Part shown: positions 990-22,962 of the stretch, piece by piece | Numbering within the stretch: the stretch's first letter is position 1 | Layout: each line of letters opens with the position of its first letter | Program-made: the position numbers and the translations under genes | Notes under the pieces: model-generated | Databases searched by the model: none | What the model saw: the letters and a program-made list of their open reading frames with translations, nothing else | Told to the model about the DNA's origin: nothing | Sequence record: MT446416.1 | Reading direction: 5' to 3' (one strand) | DNA length: 64,000 nt

Positions 990-1784
990 TTAAATTACAT
1001 ACGGTTTATAGTAATGAATCTCGTTTGCGATTGCAGTGAAGACTTTATTATTAAATCTTTCACCATAATCACGAAGTGATTCACCTTCTTCGCTTTCAAT
1101 GAAGTAATTATATACTGGTAGACGTGCGTTGTCAACACCTATAAATGATTTCATGTAAATTTGTACTAAACGATTCATTCCTTCATTTAAGCATTGCACC
1201 TCAAAGTGCTTGATACCTTTGTCTAAATGTTTGAATGCATTAATGATACCACGTTTAAAATCACGCTGCATAGTACTGAATAAATTCTCAGGGAACACGG
1301 TAATAGGTGACATTGATTTAAGAATGTATGTATCTTTGGCATTCTTAATGTACTCAATAAAGCAGTAGTTAACGTCCGGCTCAATTGAACGATCCGCGTT
1401 ATGATACCAGTGTTTAAACTCACTGTACTCAGCAAACTTATGCTGGCGTAATGCGTTACAATCCTCACACAGTGCAGTTATGTTCTCTTTATCATTACCG
1501 CCCTGGAGACAGTCCAGTACATTATGGTCTAACGTCATGCGTACAAGGCGTTTACCTTTAAGTACATAAGGTCTGAATTTATAACGGTCTTTAGTACTGT
1601 GCTTATGTAAAGTGAATACCACATTGGATTCACCACAACAATCACATTTAAAGCCATCACGTGACATTACATGAATGAGTTTTCGAGTATTTGGGCCGAA
1701 CTCAGATTTAGTAATGTTGCCGACAATTTCTGATGGGTCGTAGTATTTTGAATTCCGGCGAATCAATTCATCTATAGTGCTCAT
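990..1784 (-). CDS. HNH-family nuclease domain protein
   Basis: RDGFKCDCC...TLDH...GGNDKENITALCEDCN: Zn-binding McrA-type HNH pattern. Confidence 0.6.
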   Translation of the reverse strand: MSTIDELIRRNSKYYDPSEIVGNITKSEFGPNTRKLIHVMSRDGFKCDCCGESNVVFTLHKHSTKDRYKFRPYVLKGKRLVRMTLDHNVLDCLQGGNDKENITALCEDCNALRQHKFAEYSEFKHWYHNADRSIEPDVNYCFIEYIKNAKDTYILKSMSPITVFPENLFSTMQRDFKRGIINAFKHLDKGIKHFEVQCLNEGMNRLVQIYMKSFIGVDNARLPVYNYFIESEEGESLRDYGERFNNKVFTAIANEIHYYKPYVI

Positions 1785-1785
1785 T

Positions 1786-2016
1786 TTACATTAATCCTTC
1801 TATGCTACAACCAATAAGTACTTTTTTCACTTCAATAACTCGTACCAAATAGAATCCATTTGAAAAGTTAAAACTATACATTTGTACTAAGGCATCTGCT
1901 TCAGATTTCGCACGGATACATGATAGATATAGTTCTCGTATATCGCCATCCAACGATGCTTGTTTCTCGTCATTGATAACAATAGAACGAATCTCAAAAC
2001 GAACACCATAACTCAT
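1786..2016 (-). CDS. hypothetical protein
   Basis: ORF track; ATGA-type overlap with neighbour. Confidence 0.6.
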   Translation of the reverse strand: MSYGVRFEIRSIVINDEKQASLDGDIRELYLSCIRAKSEADALVQMYSFNFSNGFYLVRVIEVKKVLIGCSIEGLM

Positions 2017-2222
2017 TCTGTTTGTCCAACAATTAGTTTTTCTTTAGTATTACTATTGTAACACCACATTAATTCTTCACCAACTGTTCTAAGTGAAACG
2101 CTGTTTACTTGTTCATACGTACTGTCACGTACTGCAATGCATTGATTCATTGAATTCATTGGGGTGATTTGTACACCAGATTGTGGTGAAAGAGCAATAA
2201 TTAAAAAGATTACTGAATTCAT
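2013..2222 (-). CDS. small secreted or membrane protein
   Basis: Hydrophobic N-terminus; SD GAGGA; downstream of promoter 2287-2315. Confidence 0.6.
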   Translation of the reverse strand: MNSVIFLIIALSPQSGVQITPMNSMNQCIAVRDSTYEQVNSVSLRTVGEELMWCYNSNTKEKLIVGQTE

Positions 2223-2286
2223 TAGATATTCCTCAATGGTTAATCATCCATCTCTTCGAGATGTCTGTTCGCTTCTAATACTACGT

Positions 2287-2315
2287 ATTCTACGCGAATG
2301 AATCATAACTGTCAA
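2287..2315 (-). promoter_or_regulatory. sigma-70-like promoter
   Basis: TTGACA-N17-TAGAAT. Confidence 0.65.
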
Positions 2316-2378
2316 GGACTTTTAATATTGACGGGATTTGTTGAGGACTTTTTCATCCCCCGCAGGGGAATGATGGTA

Positions 2379-2404
2379 AGAAAAAAGAGACAATTAAGTC
2401 TCTT
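2379..2404 (-). terminator. intrinsic terminator ending the candidate large ncRNA
   Basis: AAGAGAC-ttaatt-GTCTCTT hairpin followed by U tract on minus strand. Confidence 0.6.
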
Positions 2405-2815
2405 CTTGACGCTGATGGCATCGGATTTTATTGTATCGTGAATTTAGGACGGATCTATATTGTAATAAATCAATCGCAAACGGAAGCGGGTTGCTCTGTT
2501 TCTCCCTATCACGGTCATATGCAACGGTCACTGGTCTTTTCATCCCAGCACTCACTTAAAACTCCATACAATCGAAGTTCAAGCTGTCTTATAATAAGAC
2601 TCCCTTAGCAAATCTGGTAAGGTGCGATCCTTATATGTCTATCGAGGAACTCTCGGTATGCTTATCGGAGTTCTTTATACAGCCGCATTGCCGTGAGGGG
2701 TTCAAACTATGCCCACATCTAACGGGTTTCTTTTGCTGTTCGTTCTGTAGCACAACTCATCTGCCCTCTACATTTTCGAGTGGTTCAGGATTATTTTATT
2801 CTAAATGAGCTACAG
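2385..2815 (-). ncRNA. candidate large structured non-coding RNA (~430 nt), class unknown
   Basis: No ORF >=60 aa in any frame; visibly more GC-rich than flanks; stems GAACTC/GAGTTC, CCTTA/TAAGG, GTCTTA-TTA-TAAGAC; ends in terminator. Confidence 0.55.
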
Positions 2816-2827
2816 GTTTTTTTTATT

Positions 2828-3472
2828 CTAAATTTTACTTAATGACAAAGTAATACGTCCATTAAGTAAATCATCGTTTAAAACATCAATTCTACGTTGT
2901 AAACCTTTTATTACACCATCTGACACACTATTATTATATTTTTTAATAATATCAGAAAGATGTTCTTTTTTGGCTAATTGCCATTTTGCATGAGCTTCTT
3001 CAGGTGTGGGAAATGCACCCAAATGATATTTTTTCTTATTTTTGTAAATTTGTGCATAATATGGATTTTTGTATTCAAAACTCATATTTTTTTTAGGTAT
3101 ATGATAACAAACACCAAGTGGTTGATTTTTATTATTTTTGTCAATGATACACATGTTTATTTCATTTGGTACAAATGAACACGTTTCAGGAGAATACATT
3201 TTTTTATTACCGTCGATTAAATCTTTATCTAATTCATAACCATCTTTGTAATTTGATATATACCATTCTTTAAATTTAGAGTATGTTTTCCATTCATCAC
3301 ATATAATAACTCCTATATATGTTTTATGAGTTTCTTGATACTTTTCAGAATAACATCGTTTTATCATATCTTTCCATGTATAATAAACTTTACTATAAAC
3401 ACTTTTTTTTGTGGAATCACCTTTAACATCATTGATTCCAAAACCATATACCAATTTCATATTAAATTCCAA
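2828..3472 (-). CDS. HNH homing endonuclease with AP2-like DNA-binding domain
   Basis: YYTWKDMIKRCY...ICDEWKTYSKFKEW...ELDKD...YSPETC core; YYAQI..KKYHLGAFPTPEEAH AP2-like tail. Confidence 0.75.
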   Translation of the reverse strand: MEFNMKLVYGFGINDVKGDSTKKSVYSKVYYTWKDMIKRCYSEKYQETHKTYIGVIICDEWKTYSKFKEWYISNYKDGYELDKDLIDGNKKMYSPETCSFVPNEINMCIIDKNNKNQPLGVCYHIPKKNMSFEYKNPYYAQIYKNKKKYHLGAFPTPEEAHAKWQLAKKEHLSDIIKKYNNSVSDGVIKGLQRRIDVLNDDLLNGRITLSLSKI

Positions 3473-3491
3473 TTATGGTTATCATACTAAC

Positions 3492-3520
3492 ATTGTATCA
3501 CACTTTCTAAATTTGTCCCA
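3492..3520 (-). promoter_or_regulatory. variant promoter TGGGACA-N13-TGA-TACAAT
   Basis: One of five copies with identical geometry (see findings). Confidence 0.6.
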
Positions 3521-3521
3521 T

Positions 3522-3551
3522 AAAAAAAGGGCTGACAGAAGTCAACCCTTT
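3522..3551 (-). terminator. intrinsic terminator after sigma factor gene
   Basis: AAGGGTTGAC-TTCT-GTCAGCCCTT then T7. Confidence 0.7.
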
Positions 3552-3555
3552 AATC

Positions 3556-4521
3556 TTAAAAATCTTCGAACTCATAACCTTTTGTCTTAACCATCTTACG
3601 CAGTCGTTCCATTGCTTCAGAGTACTTACGGTGCAATGAAGAACGAGCAGTCATGACCTTACCCTTCTCATCTTCAAAACCACTCTCAATGATTTCTCGT
3701 AGCGTTTCTGGTTCAGAATAAGAACCAATACCATGTACACGTTCAATCAATTCACGGTCTTTGGCAGATAGGTTACTCATCATTTCTGCAATACTTTGTA
3801 CCAGTGGGGTACTGACAGTTTCTACGCCTAAGTTGTAATCAGGTTCAACTGAAGTAACAATGTCAGATAATGTACTTTCTGAATCATTACTCATTTTCAT
3901 ATTCAATGCTACATAAGTGTTATTGTAAGTTAGACAATTCTTAACGTGTTGAATCTCAATACCAGTCTCTTTTGACACCATCTCAGGAGTTGGGTATTTA
4001 CCATGTTTCCTTTGATACTCTTCAACACAACGTTTCACATAAATGTTATTAACACTCATATAACGTGGGAAATGCACTAGATAATTAGCATCTGCACTTT
4101 CGTTATAGATTGTCATGTACACAGTTGTTGTTGCATATGTAATGAACTTAACATTTTTGGTAGTGTCGAACGTATGAATTGCTCGCATTAAACCTTCAAC
4201 ACCATAAGAAATCTTATCTTCAAATGGGATAAAACATGTACATTTACGTGCAACACTTACTACCATTGGATAGTTGTAGCGAACCAAAAGGTCAATGTTC
4301 TTTTCAACGTCAATACCATCACGCACTGCTTGGATGAGCATTTCATTCGTTATACCTTTAGGGCGAGTTAAACTGATACCTGTTTTTGGTTTCTCAAACT
4401 TGTGACCGTCATGTTCTTCTTCATCAACCGAATCTAGAGCCTCTAAGACGTTGACTTCTTCACTAGCAAAACACTCATCCAGTACTTCTTCAAAAATTGC
4501 ATTTAAATCAAGCTTTTTCAC
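3556..4521 (-). CDS. RNA polymerase sigma-70-family sigma factor
   Basis: Region 2: LVRYNYPMVVSVARK..FEDKISYGVEGLMRAIHTFD..KFITYAT; region 3 and degenerate region 4 (PETLREI). Confidence 0.85.
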   Translation of the reverse strand: MKKLDLNAIFEEVLDECFASEEVNVLEALDSVDEEEHDGHKFEKPKTGISLTRPKGITNEMLIQAVRDGIDVEKNIDLLVRYNYPMVVSVARKCTCFIPFEDKISYGVEGLMRAIHTFDTTKNVKFITYATTTVYMTIYNESADANYLVHFPRYMSVNNIYVKRCVEEYQRKHGKYPTPEMVSKETGIEIQHVKNCLTYNNTYVALNMKMSNDSESTLSDIVTSVEPDYNLGVETVSTPLVQSIAEMMSNLSAKDRELIERVHGIGSYSEPETLREIIESGFEDEKGKVMTARSSLHRKYSEAMERLRKMVKTKGYEFEDF

Positions 4522-6113: not shown

Positions 6114-6545
6114 TCAACTGTTTTCCGTACCTTTCTCTGCCATTTTGGTGATGTGCCATTTGAGTACTGATTTGTGTACCATAAAAAATGTGAATGCAAA
6201 GACTGTAATGGCTGCTGAAGTAACACTATTAGATAAAGACCCAAGTTGGATGTTAGTACCTAAAATAACAATAAATGGATACAACACAATAAATCTACTG
6301 TAAGGTTCGTCTCCAGTATCACGGATAAATACAAGCCTTTCATGATCAGTATCCATTGTGACAATTACAATTGGAAAGAACATAAGTGCAGACATAAGAG
6401 CAATACCAATTTGTGCTACATTGGAAATTGTAAACCACAAAGGATTTAAACCATATGAAATGTTATTTTCAGTACAGTAATATCCGAATGTATTGAATGT
6501 ACAAACTAAAAATACAAAAATGCAAATCTTATTGTATGCCCTCAT
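6114..6545 (-). CDS. multi-pass membrane protein
   Basis: About four hydrophobic segments. Confidence 0.65.
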   Translation of the reverse strand: MRAYNKICIFVFLVCTFNTFGYYCTENNISYGLNPLWFTISNVAQIGIALMSALMFFPIVIVTMDTDHERLVFIRDTGDEPYSRFIVLYPFIVILGTNIQLGSLSNSVTSAAITVFAFTFFMVHKSVLKWHITKMAEKGTENS

Positions 6546-15827: not shown

Positions 15828-16223
15828 TTATTTACGATTCCTTGCGGAGTTCTTGTTCCTCGCTCTGAATGTTGGTGTCATCGAATGACAATTAGGGCAA
15901 AGGATTTTTAAATTCGGTAGGTCATTATTTGTAGCATCACCATCAATGTGCTCAACTTCTGTCAGTACTGCACCATCAACTGGGTGACGTTTATCCCATC
16001 CACATTCTTCACATGCAGTTCCGCGTGTTTCATGTAGATATCTTCTCACAAATGGGCATAACTGTATGGTAATACCTTTATATCCAGGATGTTCACCGTT
16101 AAGCCATTTATCAACTTTCTGTTGATATTGTAGCTCTTGTTGACATGCAACACTACAATATTTTGTTTGGCCCTTTCGAACCAATTCAATTTTACAACAT
16201 GTACAATAACGTTTTTCTTTCAT
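15828..16223 (-). CDS. HNH endonuclease
   Basis: YCSVACQ Zn finger; CEECGW...EVEHIDGDATNNDLPNLKILCPNCH; start moved to MKEKR (16223) by SD GGAG spacing. Confidence 0.85.
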   Translation of the reverse strand: MKEKRYCTCCKIELVRKGQTKYCSVACQQELQYQQKVDKWLNGEHPGYKGITIQLCPFVRRYLHETRGTACEECGWDKRHPVDGAVLTEVEHIDGDATNNDLPNLKILCPNCHSMTPTFRARNKNSARNRK

Positions 16224-16229
16224 ATAGTT

Positions 16230-16254
16230 CTCCATATATTATGGAGTATTTATA
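16230..16254 (-). promoter_or_regulatory. T4-late-type promoter plus RBS-sequestering hairpin
   Basis: TATAAATA (16247-16254) directly followed by CTCCATA-ATA-TATGGAG hairpin that contains the SD. Confidence 0.6.
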
Positions 16255-17615: not shown

Positions 17616-17643
17616 TTTAATTTCCTATTATCATTTCGTTTTG

Positions 17644-17716
17644 CGACTCTGGAGGAACTCGAATCCCCAACCAATTAATTAACAGTTAATCGCACCACCA
17701 ATTGTGCTACAGAGTC
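17644..17716 (-). tRNA. trnN: tRNA-Asn(GTT)
   Basis: GACTCTG/CAGAGTC acceptor, ATTAA-CT-GTT-AA-TTAAT, GGGGA-TTCGAGT-TCCTC; no encoded CCA. Confidence 0.9.
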
Positions 17717-17724
17717 ATAATTAT

Positions 17725-18429
17725 TTACAAGCCATGTCTTTTCAAAAATCTAGCAAACACATTTTTGGAAGCACCATAGCTTTCATATATACTAACTTTT
17801 TTCTCACCATTAGTCAAACGTTTTTTTATATCTTCTATGTTATCTTCTAAACGTTTTACGTTTGCAAATTTCTTAGATGGTATGTTATTTTTGGTTCTAT
17901 AATTCAGTACTGAACCTGAACTGATATTCATTATTTTAGCAATTTCAGTATCTAACAAACCTTGGTTAATATATTCTTTTACCTTTTCATAATCAACTGA
18001 TGTTTCACCACCCTTTGTATTTGACGGAGGCTTGACCATTTTTTGTGAACACTCAACACTACAATATTTTGTATATGATTTCACTTTAGTATGTCTACGG
18101 GAAAATTCCGTATTACAACAAGCACATACAAATGAATCATATCGTGCTTGTACTCCATTCTTATGTGTTTTATAACGATGTTCATCAACATGAAGTATTT
18201 GTAAATTAGACAAATCATCATTTGTGAAATCATTATCAATGTGGTCTGCTTCTTCAGACTCAGTTAAATATCTACCTTCTTGTACTGCTAATAGATATCT
18301 GGCATATTGAGTACTGCTTCTATCAGTTGGAGAATTATAAAGTATTACAGTTCTTCTACCTTCAGGGTTTATCTGTATATACCCATTCTTCCAATCATTA
18401 CTATATGGATATTCTAATTTTATTTTCAT
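17725..18429 (-). CDS. free-standing HNH homing endonuclease
   Basis: YARYLLAV..GRYLTESEEADHIDNDFTNDDLSNLQIL; CACC..YCSVEC Zn finger; C-terminal HTH-like region. Confidence 0.85.
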   Translation of the reverse strand: MKIKLEYPYSNDWKNGYIQINPEGRRTVILYNSPTDRSSTQYARYLLAVQEGRYLTESEEADHIDNDFTNDDLSNLQILHVDEHRYKTHKNGVQARYDSFVCACCNTEFSRRHTKVKSYTKYCSVECSQKMVKPPSNTKGGETSVDYEKVKEYINQGLLDTEIAKIMNISSGSVLNYRTKNNIPSKKFANVKRLEDNIEDIKKRLTNGEKKVSIYESYGASKNVFARFLKRHGL

Positions 18430-18448: not shown

Positions 18449-18753
18449 TGAGCCATCTGTGAGTCGAACACAGTACCTAACGATTCGTATAATCTATAGT
18501 TTTCACTATAGTACGGACTATATCATCATCCCATAGGGATGCCGGACGCTAATGATGTATTACACAGTAAGATCGTACTGTACCATCTAGTCTCTGCACC
18601 TTCCCAATACGCTTATTGGGCTTGGCTCAGGATTGTCATCACCATTACGTGTTAAGATTTCCCTGAATTCATCCAGTTTTTCAATCACCATTACTGATGA
18701 AAGTCACCATTGTCGATGAGTCGTTTGCTCTAACCACCGTGAGCTAATGGCCC
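18449..18753 (-). tRNA. intron-containing tRNA(CAU), probably Ile2 (exons 18716-18753 and 18449-18485)
   Basis: Spliced GGGCCATTAGCTCACGGTGGTTAGAGCAAACGACTCAT|AATCGTTAGGTACTGTGTTCGACTCACAGATGGCTCA folds as a cloverleaf; CGACTCATAATCG arm resembles enterobacterial Ile2; elongator Met not excluded. Confidence 0.85.
18486..18715 (-). mobile_element. group I self-splicing intron, 230 nt, no internal ORF
   Basis: P GAAUUCAGGGAAA 18658-18670, Q AAUCCUGAGCC 18624-18634, R GCAGAGACUAGA 18586-18597, S GAUAUAGUCC 18515-18524; P7 GACUA/UAGUC; P1 with U.G at 5' splice site; P9 with GAAA loop; terminal G. Confidence 0.92.
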
Positions 18754-18782
18754 GATTTGGGTGTTCCTAGTGTTTCATTATT

Positions 18783-18996
<214 letters not shown>

Positions 18997-19008
18997 AAAT
19001 TAATTATA

Positions 19009-19401
<393 letters not shown>

Positions 19402-20173: not shown

Positions 20174-20376
<203 letters not shown>

Positions 20377-20380
<4 letters not shown>

Positions 20381-20541
20381 ATTCGTACCAGTAGTTCAAT
20401 TAAGTACATTTCATATGCTGGATCGTTGATAAGTTTATCATACAGATGTGACTCTGAAATGAATTCCCAATGATATTTTCGCCATTTACCAAAACCTGCA
20501 TATCTAAAATTAATGTCATTCATCCATTCTTCATGTGTCAT
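20377..20541 (-). CDS. 54-aa MTHEEW microprotein 2
   Basis: MTHEEWMNDINFRYAGFGKWRKYHWEFISESHLYDKLINDPAYEMYLIELLVRI. Confidence 0.75.
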
Positions 20542-20702
20542 AATCGTACCATTATTTCAATAAAGAACCACGGATATACTTCATGGTTTATAAGTTTATC
20601 GTATTCTGCTGGGTCTGATATAATTTCCCAATGATATTTTCGCCAACTACCTATACCCGAATATCTAACATTAATGTCATCCATCCATTCTTCATGTGTC
20701 AT
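20538..20702 (-). CDS. 54-aa MTHEEW microprotein 1
   Basis: MTHEEWMDDINVRYSGIGSWRKYHWEIISDPAEYDKLINHEVYPWFFIEIMVRL; SD AAGG. Confidence 0.75.
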   Translation of the reverse strand: MTHEEWMDDINVRYSGIGSWRKYHWEIISDPAEYDKLINHEVYPWFFIEIMVRL

Positions 20703-20740: not shown

Positions 20741-21279
<539 letters not shown>

Positions 21280-21987: not shown

Positions 21988-22962
21988 TTATTTAACGTGT
22001 TTCCATGATACACCTCTAATAGCTCTACTTATTTGCATTCTATGAACGCCAAACTTTTTTGCTAATGCGTCATAACCAAATTCTTTATGTTTTGGTACAA
22101 ATACTTTTCTACAGTATCTAACTATATCTTCAGTTAATTTGGAATTTGGTTGTTCATCACCTTTAAGATGATAATCAGGGTTATTTATTTCTTTATATTC
22201 TGTACTTTCTTTTGCAGTCGCCCACATAAGATTGTCTAAATCATTATGTTCTTTATTACCATCTTTATGTATTACGTATGGTTTGTTTTCGGGATTTGGT
22301 ATAAAAGCCATTGCCATTACACGACTTATTTTAAATCCTATATGTTTGAATTCATCACCAACTTTTATTTTTGTTGCATGATATGGATTTCCATTACTTA
22401 GAGTCTGCTTTAATATTTTTCCAGTGCGTTTGCTGAATAAATTTCCATTATCACTAATAGAAAAATCATCCTCAAATCCAATTACATCTTTAAATATTTC
22501 AGTTTCATTTTCTGGTGGTTCAAATGGTATTCGGTTTTTATAGTAATATGTATTTTTACAAGAAGTTCCGCAAAATCCTTTTGACCTACTATCAGAAATT
22601 ATTATTCTATTAGTACAGTTGATACATTTTGTTTCATATGGTACAAAGGGTTTATAATTTTCGTATTTTATATTACTTCTTTCTAACATATGAATTCTAG
22701 CATGTTCAGATGCTGACAATATTTCAAGATTTTCTGGGGAATTATTTAATATATTTTCATCTATATGATGTACATGTTCATCGGATGATAACCATCTACC
22801 TGCTGCAACTGCTGCAACATGTCTGTGATAATATACTCTCCCAGTTTTATGACACATGGGGTGTTCTTTATCCATAAAATAAAGATAACCCTTATTAGTG
22901 CCGTGTAATTTTAATTGGTTTATTATACATACCAAAGTTCTCCGTAAGTTGTTGTTTCGCAT
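21988..22962 (-). CDS. homing endonuclease with two HNH-type domains
   Basis: N-half YYHRHVAA..GRWLSSDEHVHHIDENILNNSPENLEIL; C-half NUMOD4-like IFKDVIGFED..SISDNG and AFIPNPENKPYVIHKDGNKEHNDLDNLMWAT; start codon uncertain. Confidence 0.85.
   Translation of the reverse strand: MRNNNLRRTLVCIINQLKLHGTNKGYLYFMDKEHPMCHKTGRVYYHRHVAAVAAGRWLSSDEHVHHIDENILNNSPENLEILSASEHARIHMLERSNIKYENYKPFVPYETKCINCTNRIIISDSRSKGFCGTSCKNTYYYKNRIPFEPPENETEIFKDVIGFEDDFSISDNGNLFSKRTGKILKQTLSNGNPYHATKIKVGDEFKHIGFKISRVMAMAFIPNPENKPYVIHKDGNKEHNDLDNLMWATAKESTEYKEINNPDYHLKGDEQPNSKLTEDIVRYCRKVFVPKHKEFGYDALAKKFGVHRMQISRAIRGVSWKHVK

Follow-up and report, generated by a model that had tools for sequence, protein, structure and literature searches.

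In bacteria and plastids, group I introns are known from tRNA genes, and in phages from protein genes. The phage introns, such as those of T4 td, nrdB, and nrdD, of Twort and the Kayvirus phages, of psbA, and of terminase genes, split open reading frames (ORFs), and a 2014 review noted that all phage introns then known were in protein-coding genes, even though phages carry many tRNA genes (PMC3984707). Introns go unmentioned in a global survey of the tRNA genes of viruses (PMC6409571), and the literature searched, of which the coverage was partial so that an earlier report is possible, describes no group I intron within any phage tRNA gene. The locus described here, in a 64-kb stretch (the window) of the genome of Escherichia virus TH47 (MT446416.1; 352,450 bp), a relative of Asteriusvirus PBECO4, would fill this gap. 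A phage tRNA gene with the anticodon CAU, most likely encoding tRNA-Ile2, is very probably split between U36 and A37 by a 230-nt, ORF-less phage group I intron of the IA type. Unlike the introns of phage protein genes, this one splits an anticodon loop. It shares its type of host gene, and the very phosphodiester that it interrupts, with the Azoarcus-type IC3 introns (Azoarcus BH72; Acidovorax and Burkholderia according to PMC8450103). Both kinds lack an ORF, are about 200 to 230 nt long, and are missed by tRNA finders (PMC8450103), and both set a GUG guide against CAU (PMC2241849). The TH47 intron differs from the Azoarcus type in having a covariation-supported P7.1 extension and in residing in a phage rather than in a bacterium.

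The split tRNA(CAU) gene and its intron

The split gene occupies positions 18753..18449 of the minus strand, which also carries 47 of the 48 long ORFs of the window (G+C content, 34.6%), and consists of a 75-nt tRNA with the 230-nt intron inserted after U36. The 5' exon (18753..18716; 38 nt, G1 to U36; GGGCCAUUAGCUCACGGUGGUUAGAGCAAACGACUCAU) ends with ACUCAU and thus with the anticodon CAU. The intron (18715..18486) begins with CGACAA, runs from CGACAAUGGUGA to AUUAUACG, and ends with a G at 18486, and the 3' exon (18485..18449; 37 nt, A37 to A73; AAUCGUUAGGUACUGUGUUCGACUCACAGAUGGCUCA) begins with AAUCGUU. When the insert is removed, the joined exons give a 7/4/5/5 cloverleaf with the anticodon CAU, called tRNA(cat) by ARAGORN. 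The first-pass annotation had proposed this layout, its coordinates, and a clean cloverleaf after removal of the insert, all of which hold, with the clarification that the gene lies on the minus strand; it had also taken the source for a jumbo phage of an enterobacterial type, which agrees with the 352-kb genome of the Escherichia coli phage TH47.

The Rfam covariance model Intron_gpI (RF00028), a check that the first-pass annotation had suggested, matches the insert over the full length of the model with 100.5 bits (gathering score, 50; E value, 7.5e-25), and this is the sole match within the window, which places the intron call far beyond chance. The P, Q, R, and S elements (AAUUCAGGGAAA, AAUCCUGAGCC, GUGCAGAGACUA, and AUGAUAUAGUCC, respectively) agree with the model consensus. 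A structure from P1 to P9 was drawn by hand from the Rfam alignment and then tested on an alignment of eight sequences. In P1 (18704..18719, minus strand, as for all of the helices), U33 to U36 of the exon and C1 and G2 of the intron (UCAU/CG) pair with the guide UGGUGA (18709..18704) across the loop ACAA, with a U36·G pair at the 5' splice site. P2 (18685..18700) is the hairpin UCAUCA-GUAA-UGGUGA, in which five of six pairs show compensatory change and which is present in the minimum free energy (MFE) fold, and P3 (5' strand, 18676..18670; 3' strand, 18548..18542) encloses the span 18542..18676. The P4-P5-P6-P6a domain (18598..18666), containing the P and Q elements, is found in the Rfam match, the alignment, and the MFE fold. 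The 5' strand of P7, GACUA (18588..18592), lies in the R element and pairs with UAGUC (18520..18516) in the S element, being invariant in all eight sequences, and it is followed, before the 3' strand of P3, by a 34-nt P7.1-type extension (18554..18587) with an outer GAUG/CAUC and an inner ACAGUA/UACUGU helix, in which 7 of 10 pairs show compensatory change. P8 (AUCCC-UAU-GGGAU; 18528..18540) and P9 (CUAUAGU-GAAA-ACUAUAG; 18494..18511) are found in both the alignment and the MFE fold. Folding of the intron alone, unconstrained, recovers P2, P3, P4, P6, P6a, P8, and P9. The elements named in the first-pass annotation, namely P, Q, R, and S, the GACUA/UAGUC P7, a P1 with U·G, a GAAA-capped P9, and a terminal G, are therefore all present. 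The 5' limit given by Rfam (18807; span, 18494-18807) was rejected as an alignment artifact, in which the P1 and P2 of the model were laid on a hairpin upstream of the tRNA gene and the 5' exon was treated as an insertion. This hairpin (UUGUUA...UAACAA; 18777-18807, minus strand), which misled the alignment at its 5' end, overlaps a weak promoter-like match and is kept in the phages Turkey5 and WPEC5.

The boundaries of the intron are fixed by intron-less alleles. Four different 230-nt frames each leave a 7-nt anticodon loop, with the anticodons ACG, CCG, CAG, and CAU, and only in the CAU frame does a U precede the 5' splice site and the intron end with a G. Intron-less alleles are carried by PBECO4, A4, CRJP21, WPEC5, and several Salmonella SD phages. 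The exons of WPEC5 and PBECO4 share 93.4% identity with those of TH47, the 5' exon matching except for a 1-nt deletion in the D loop, and the junction reads ACTCAT/AATCG (...GCAAACGACTCAT/AATCGTTCGG...), which leaves only the CAU frame. The survey of relatives proposed in the first-pass annotation thus turned up sister phages with exactly the junction that it predicted. The boundary preferred by ARAGORN (intron CATCGAC...GATTAT; anticodon ACG) was discarded, since such an intron ends in U and provides no U·G at the end of the exon and since the intron-less alleles read CAT.

Introns at the same 36/37 site occur in several other phages and contigs. That of Turkey5 is 99% identical to the TH47 intron, another is found in the 179-kb metagenome contig L030, and those of the Klebsiella phages Muenster, KP13-7, RCIP0023, and phiKp_21 are about 91% identical. 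The Klebsiella phage OU509535 and the contig L032 have an intron at 36/37 of a different tRNA(CAU), with the acceptor stem GGGACUG, its own P1, and a Vibrio-like P9, and the metagenome contig L031 has a 244-nt variant at 36/37 with an enlarged P8. The five relatives that were scanned with the Rfam model score from 89.9 to 104.1 bits. A scan of IMG/VR for the exon-intron junction (GACTCAT N6-12 GTGACTTTCA) gave seven matches, none of which has an Rfam group I intron and which are therefore regarded as chance matches, and a scan of IMG/VR with the P3/P4 core gave eight loci, none in a tRNA gene (seven lie within or next to apparent coding sequence, and the eighth is a chance match within an ORF).

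Covariation was assessed in the alignment of eight introns, from TH47, Turkey5, the Klebsiella phages Muenster, phiKp_21, and OU509535, and three Vibrio phages. Standard pairs are formed by 97.5% of the alignment cells, compared with only 31 to 48% when the 3' partners are slid by one to three columns, and 33 of the 64 pairs show two-sided, compensatory changes; the observed values were reached by none of 500 shuffles. Every helix contains compensatory change, the P7.1-type extension included, except the invariant P7. Within the tRNA-resident clade alone, 13 pairs vary, and all of them are still paired. The intron side of P1 varies and yet pairs, with C-G/G·U in TH47, G-C in OU509535, and A-U/U-A in L031, and the guide differs with the exon: GUGA faces the exon UCAU in the tRNA hosts, whereas GGUCG faces CGAUU in the Vibrio terminase genes, indicating that each intron has had its guide adapted to its host gene. 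The tRNA part of the locus is conserved as well, in that four diverged intron-bearing lineages (TH47/Turkey5/L030, Muenster/phiKp_21, OU509535/L032, and L031) have tRNA stems that remain paired, the acceptor and T stems through compensatory change. Together, the covariance-model score, the covariation, the exact intron-less junctions, and the cloverleaves kept in four lineages argue for a working intron in a working tRNA gene.

Such a gene is easily overlooked in annotation. With default settings, ARAGORN reports four other tRNAs for the window and misses the split tRNA(CAU); when introns are allowed, the gene is found with its boundary placed 3 nt too far 5' and is labeled tRNA-Arg(ACG), in keeping with the view of the first-pass annotation that standard finders can miss it. 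tRNAscan-SE 2.0 is not designed to detect group I introns, and such introns have been reported in bacterial tRNA-Ile2 genes (PMC8450103). At this locus, the split tRNA is unannotated in all three annotated GenBank records, those of Turkey5, Muenster, and phiKp_21. Pipelines that drop the tRNA or mislabel it as tRNA-Arg(ACG) leave the tRNA inventories of these jumbo phages, and codon-usage arguments built on them, incomplete. Elsewhere in Turkey5 (6356-6474 of the sequence segment retrieved), GenBank has a 119-nt tRNA-Leu where neither ARAGORN nor Rfam finds a tRNA, which may be a miscall or another split gene.

Intron lineage and the insertion site shared with bacteria

The nearest relatives of the intron outside tRNA genes are introns of the terminase large-subunit gene in the Vibrio phages R16F, VnaP, and 1.187.O, with 75 to 80% identity over about 170 nt, and more distant matches lie in Staphylococcus Kayvirus phages, in cyanophage psbA, and in terminase or polymerase genes of Aeromonas, Ralstonia, and Pseudoalteromonas phages. 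Maximum-likelihood analysis places the six tRNA-resident introns in a single clade that lies among the protein-gene introns (UFboot, 89; SH-aLRT, 97). The Vibrio terminase introns are the closest sequence family, and they share with the TH47 intron the P2 to P9 architecture, P7.1 included. P7.1 and P7.2 helices serve as a feature for classification (PMC3984707). On the basis of the extension and of sequence kinship, the intron is assigned to the phage protein-gene lineage, as IA type (perhaps IA2-like) with P7.1, and not to the IC3 lineage of tRNA introns. In Vibrio phage vB_VpaM_R16F, terL is annotated in five pieces (1770-3798 of the segment retrieved) and contains four group I introns that score from 72 to 94 bits each.

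For comparison, bacterial genomes were scanned with an Azoarcus-type ribozyme motif, which gave 101 loci, mostly from Betaproteobacteria, of which 67 could be parsed. All but two of these (65 of 67) lie in tRNA(CAU) genes and read ACUCAU/...G/AAUCC, and their introns interrupt the same bond as in TH47; the median length of the bacterial tRNA(CAU) introns among the parsed loci is 206 nt. The strands of P7 are separated by 66 nt in TH47 and in a Vibrio terL intron and by 37 nt in a Massilia tRNA(CAU) intron, the only bacterial one measured, in which P7 is followed directly by the 3' strand of P3 without a P7.1 insertion. Global identity to the TH47 intron is 54% for the Massilia intron and 75% for the Vibrio one. 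With the IC3 introns, the TH47 intron therefore has in common the insertion in the anticodon loop after CAU, and neither the IC3 core architecture nor IC3 sequence kinship was found. Descent from a bacterial IC3 tRNA-Ile2 intron was rejected in view of the tree, the identities of 54% versus 75%, and the spacing of 66 versus 37 nt, and the different core and lineage at the same bond indicate an independent arrival of the phage intron at the Azoarcus site. The first-pass annotation was right that the Azoarcus intron sits at this position, and the coincidence is one of convergence, not of kinship. Two unrelated ribozyme lineages have thus arrived at U36/A37 of tRNA-Ile2, each with a GUG guide against CAU, which suggests that introns find an unusually favorable landing site in the anticodon loop. 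Among the bacterial loci, the contig CAMCBU010000004.1, titled as a Klebsiella pneumoniae metagenome-assembled genome, carries an Azoarcus-like intron of the betaproteobacterial type in tRNA(CAU), an intron that would not be expected in Klebsiella; the contig may have been misbinned.

Probable tRNA identity and proposed splicing and mobility

The best E. coli matches of the spliced tRNA are annotated as tRNA-Ile, and it shares 60/79 positions with E. coli tRNA-Ile(CAU), 54/80 with elongator tRNA-Met, and 39/79 with initiator tRNA-Met (metZ). Initiator tRNAs have a mismatched C1×A72 and an anticodon stem with three G:C pairs, whereas the spliced tRNA has a paired G1-C72 and the anticodon stem AACGA/UCGUU, of which ACGA/UCGU agrees with E. 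coli tRNA-Ile2 and not with tRNA-Met. AUA accounts for 17% of the Ile codons in the ORFs of the window (12.6 per 1,000 codons); in E. coli, its share of the Ile codons is roughly 7%. The pairs 4:69 and 5:68 are identity elements for E. coli TilS (PMC11947777), and the tRNAs of TH47, Muenster, and L031 have C4:G69 and C5:G68, as does E. coli tRNA-Ile2, unlike the U4:A69 and A5:U68 of the E. coli elongator tRNA-Met. The spliced product is thus probably tRNA-Ile2, which would carry lysidine, be charged with isoleucine, and read the rare codon AUA, as the first-pass annotation had proposed. Its further statement that the supply of AUA-decoding tRNA depends on splicing applies only to the phage-encoded part of that supply, since the host has a tRNA-Ile2 of its own. 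It is rather unlikely that the intron splices to release an elongator tRNA-Met reading AUG. Such a product would be in keeping with the anticodon CAU, with the label tRNA-Met that ARAGORN and most GenBank records give to the intron-less homologs, and with the host tRNA of OU509535, a less clear case whose A4:U69 departs from the E. coli TilS rule and which resembles the tRNA(CAU) of Stx-converting and other phages, one of them annotated as tRNA-Ile. It is opposed by the two identity pairs, the anticodon stem, and the E. coli matches, and by the record of Salmonella phage 7t3, which labels the homolog tRNA-Ile. The other phage tRNAs of the window include Arg(UCU), which reads AGA, a codon that is rare in E. 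coli, so that a role in supplementing rare codons would fit, and this was also counted against tRNA-Met.

A gene for a free-standing HNH endonuclease of 234 amino acids (17725..18429, minus strand; PHROG phrog_14913, E value of 2.6e-56) begins 19 nt past the 3' end of the tRNA. It has no Pfam match at an E value of ≤0.01 and found nothing in a sequence search of the PDB. Homologs occupy the same slot, between tRNA(CAU) and tRNA-Asn, in Turkey5 (93.6% identity) and in RaK2 and K64-1 (70.6%), the last two of which have an intron-less, divergent tRNA. The slot of the intron-less PBECO4 is a 4-nt spacer with no endonuclease gene, that of the intron-bearing OU509535 holds an unrelated NUMOD4/HNH_3 ORF, and in Muenster (with the intron) and WPEC5 (without it), tRNA-Asn comes first and is followed by a different HNH gene. 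JP4 lacks tRNA(CAU) at this spot and has an HNH gene where TH47 has the tRNA. One type of tRNA-Asn is common to the genomes with an endonuclease gene in this slot. The arrangement resembles that of T4 mobE with the nrdB intron and of cyanophage F-CphI with the psbA intron, where an ORF-less intron lies near a free-standing endonuclease gene, and that of T4 SegB, the gene of which lies within a phage tRNA cluster that varies in content among relatives. It departs from these systems in that the TH47-type intron and the endonuclease are found together in some genomes and separately in others. The intron and the HNH gene may, tentatively and with considerable doubt, form a collaborative (trans) homing pair, in which the HNH protein would cut the intron-less tRNA(CAU) at the insertion site or close to it, the intron would protect against cutting, and both would spread. 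Such homing is consistent with an intron that has no ORF beside an HNH gene only 19 nt past the tRNA, with the presence of a different NUMOD4/HNH_3 gene in the same slot beside the intron-bearing tRNA of OU509535, with the variation of the slot from an empty spacer to endonuclease genes, and with the precedents of mobE, psbA, and SegB (PMC2790892, PMC2330249, and PMC3984707). The T stem in the 3' exon of TH47 matches that of the Muenster allele and not that of the sister intron-less alleles, as expected from coconversion, but the intron-bearing L031 has the reverse variant. In RaK2 and K64-1, the HNH gene stands beside a tRNA gene that lacks the intron, and in Muenster, the intron is present and this HNH gene absent, by which a strict linkage of the two is ruled out, and cleavage could instead fall in tRNA-Asn, the type of which covaries with the presence of an endonuclease gene. 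A broader proposal, which we regard as unlikely, is that collaborative homing in jumbo phages operates here on a noncoding gene, with HNH proteins targeting the anticodon region of tRNA-Ile2, the ORF-less intron serving as both immunity and cargo, and the IA-type ribozyme being carried across Asteriusvirus and Alcyoneusvirus and between two tRNA(CAU) genes. A further possibility of this speculative kind is that splicing gates the timing of phage-made AUA decoding during infection.

The reading of the locus as a working group I intron in a phage tRNA-Ile2 gene has to be set against several observations that count against it. GTP-dependent splicing and the ligated junction, like the identity of the tRNA in vivo and the route of mobility, are what we infer from sequence, and the assignment to tRNA-Ile2 stands on similarity and two identity pairs. 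The P10 pairing to the 3' exon is weak, with about 1 to 2 bp by inspection, so that the anticodon stem presumably keeps the exons together. P7 is invariant, and covariation is thus uninformative for it. The spliced tRNA of Muenster is unrecognized by ARAGORN, a failure that we attribute to its 12-nt D loop. All four combinations of intron and HNH gene exist (PBECO4 has neither, RaK2 only the HNH gene, Muenster only the intron, and TH47 both), so the linkage between them is weak. The acceptor stem of TH47 has a G2·U71 wobble and CCA is not encoded, ACAA coming next, whereas the intron-less alleles have G2-C71 and an encoded CCA. This last difference, which Turkey5 shares, could mark early decay, with the pairing of the cloverleaf still intact, and would suit an account in which the intron is a splicing-dead remnant, the split tRNA is a pseudogene, and the phage relies on the tRNA-Ile2 of its host. 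A single P9 mismatch in Turkey5 and the lack of tRNA(CAU) at this spot in several relatives, such as JP4, which makes the gene dispensable in some genomes, point the same way. Such decay is nevertheless highly improbable, because the catalytic core reaches scores as high as those of proven phage introns, compensatory changes have preserved the helices of the ribozyme and the stems of the tRNA ever since these lineages diverged, and the exons are identical in three independent TH47-type sequences.

For a working intron, the following course of splicing is proposed. In the precursor, U33 to U36 and the first two bases of the intron would pair with the guide to form P1, with U36·G at the splice site, while the anticodon stem would hold both exons together. 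A guanosine bound at P7 would attack after U36, the terminal G at 18486 would then take the guanosine site, and U36 would be joined to A37. The ligated tRNA would be trimmed, given its CCA by host enzymes, lysidinylated by the TilS of the host, and charged with isoleucine. As to origin, a lineage otherwise found in phage protein-coding genes, among them those for terminase, would have colonized a site used by unrelated IC3 introns and would have spread between jumbo phages, probably by recombination in mixed infections and possibly with the aid of the downstream free-standing HNH endonucleases. Alleles with and without the intron, and neighborhoods with and without endonuclease genes, occur among culturable E. 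coli phages, which makes both the mobility of the intron and a splicing-dependent supply of tRNA directly testable.

Neighboring genes and other features

The tRNA region of TH47 is a hot spot for homing endonucleases, packed with such genes, as in the case of T4 SegB (PMC2330249). Besides the gene in the slot, there are three further free-standing ORFs of the HNH type no more than 7 kb from the tRNA cluster, at 15828-16235, 20741-21265, and 21988-22962 (all on the minus strand), of which one has an HNH domain, one has NUMOD4 and HNH_3, and one, of 324 amino acids, has HNH_3 and NUMOD4. In OU509535, the ORF that directly follows the intron-bearing tRNA(CAU) (about 1780-2190 of the segment retrieved; MEWRKLYLKELD...) is unannotated and, by eye, was judged from its motifs to be of the NUMOD4/HNH_3 type.

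The split gene is flanked by two tRNA genes called by ARAGORN on the minus strand, upstream tRNA-Ser(GCU) (18907..18996) and downstream tRNA-Asn(GUU) (17643..17716), the latter being of the type common to genomes with an endonuclease gene in the slot. In WPEC5 (2864-2948 of the segment retrieved) and Muenster (2820-2903), tRNA-Asn(GUU) is 84 to 85 nt long and has a hairpin-like extra arm (GUCAGAAAUGAC), which is unusual for tRNA-Asn; TH47, RaK2, and OU509535 have a normal tRNA-Asn of 73 to 74 nt. A weak candidate promoter-like match (TTGTTA-16-AATAAT; 18777..18804, minus strand; 9 of 12 positions matching) lies just upstream of tRNA(CAU), and a better one (TGGACA-17-TATAAT; 19031..19003) lies upstream of tRNA-Ser. 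Farther upstream, three tandem paralogous ORFs of 54 amino acids (20216-20702, minus strand) each begin with MTHEEWM; Turkey5, WPEC5, and PBECO4 have this triplet as well, as 165-nt ORFs annotated as hypothetical.

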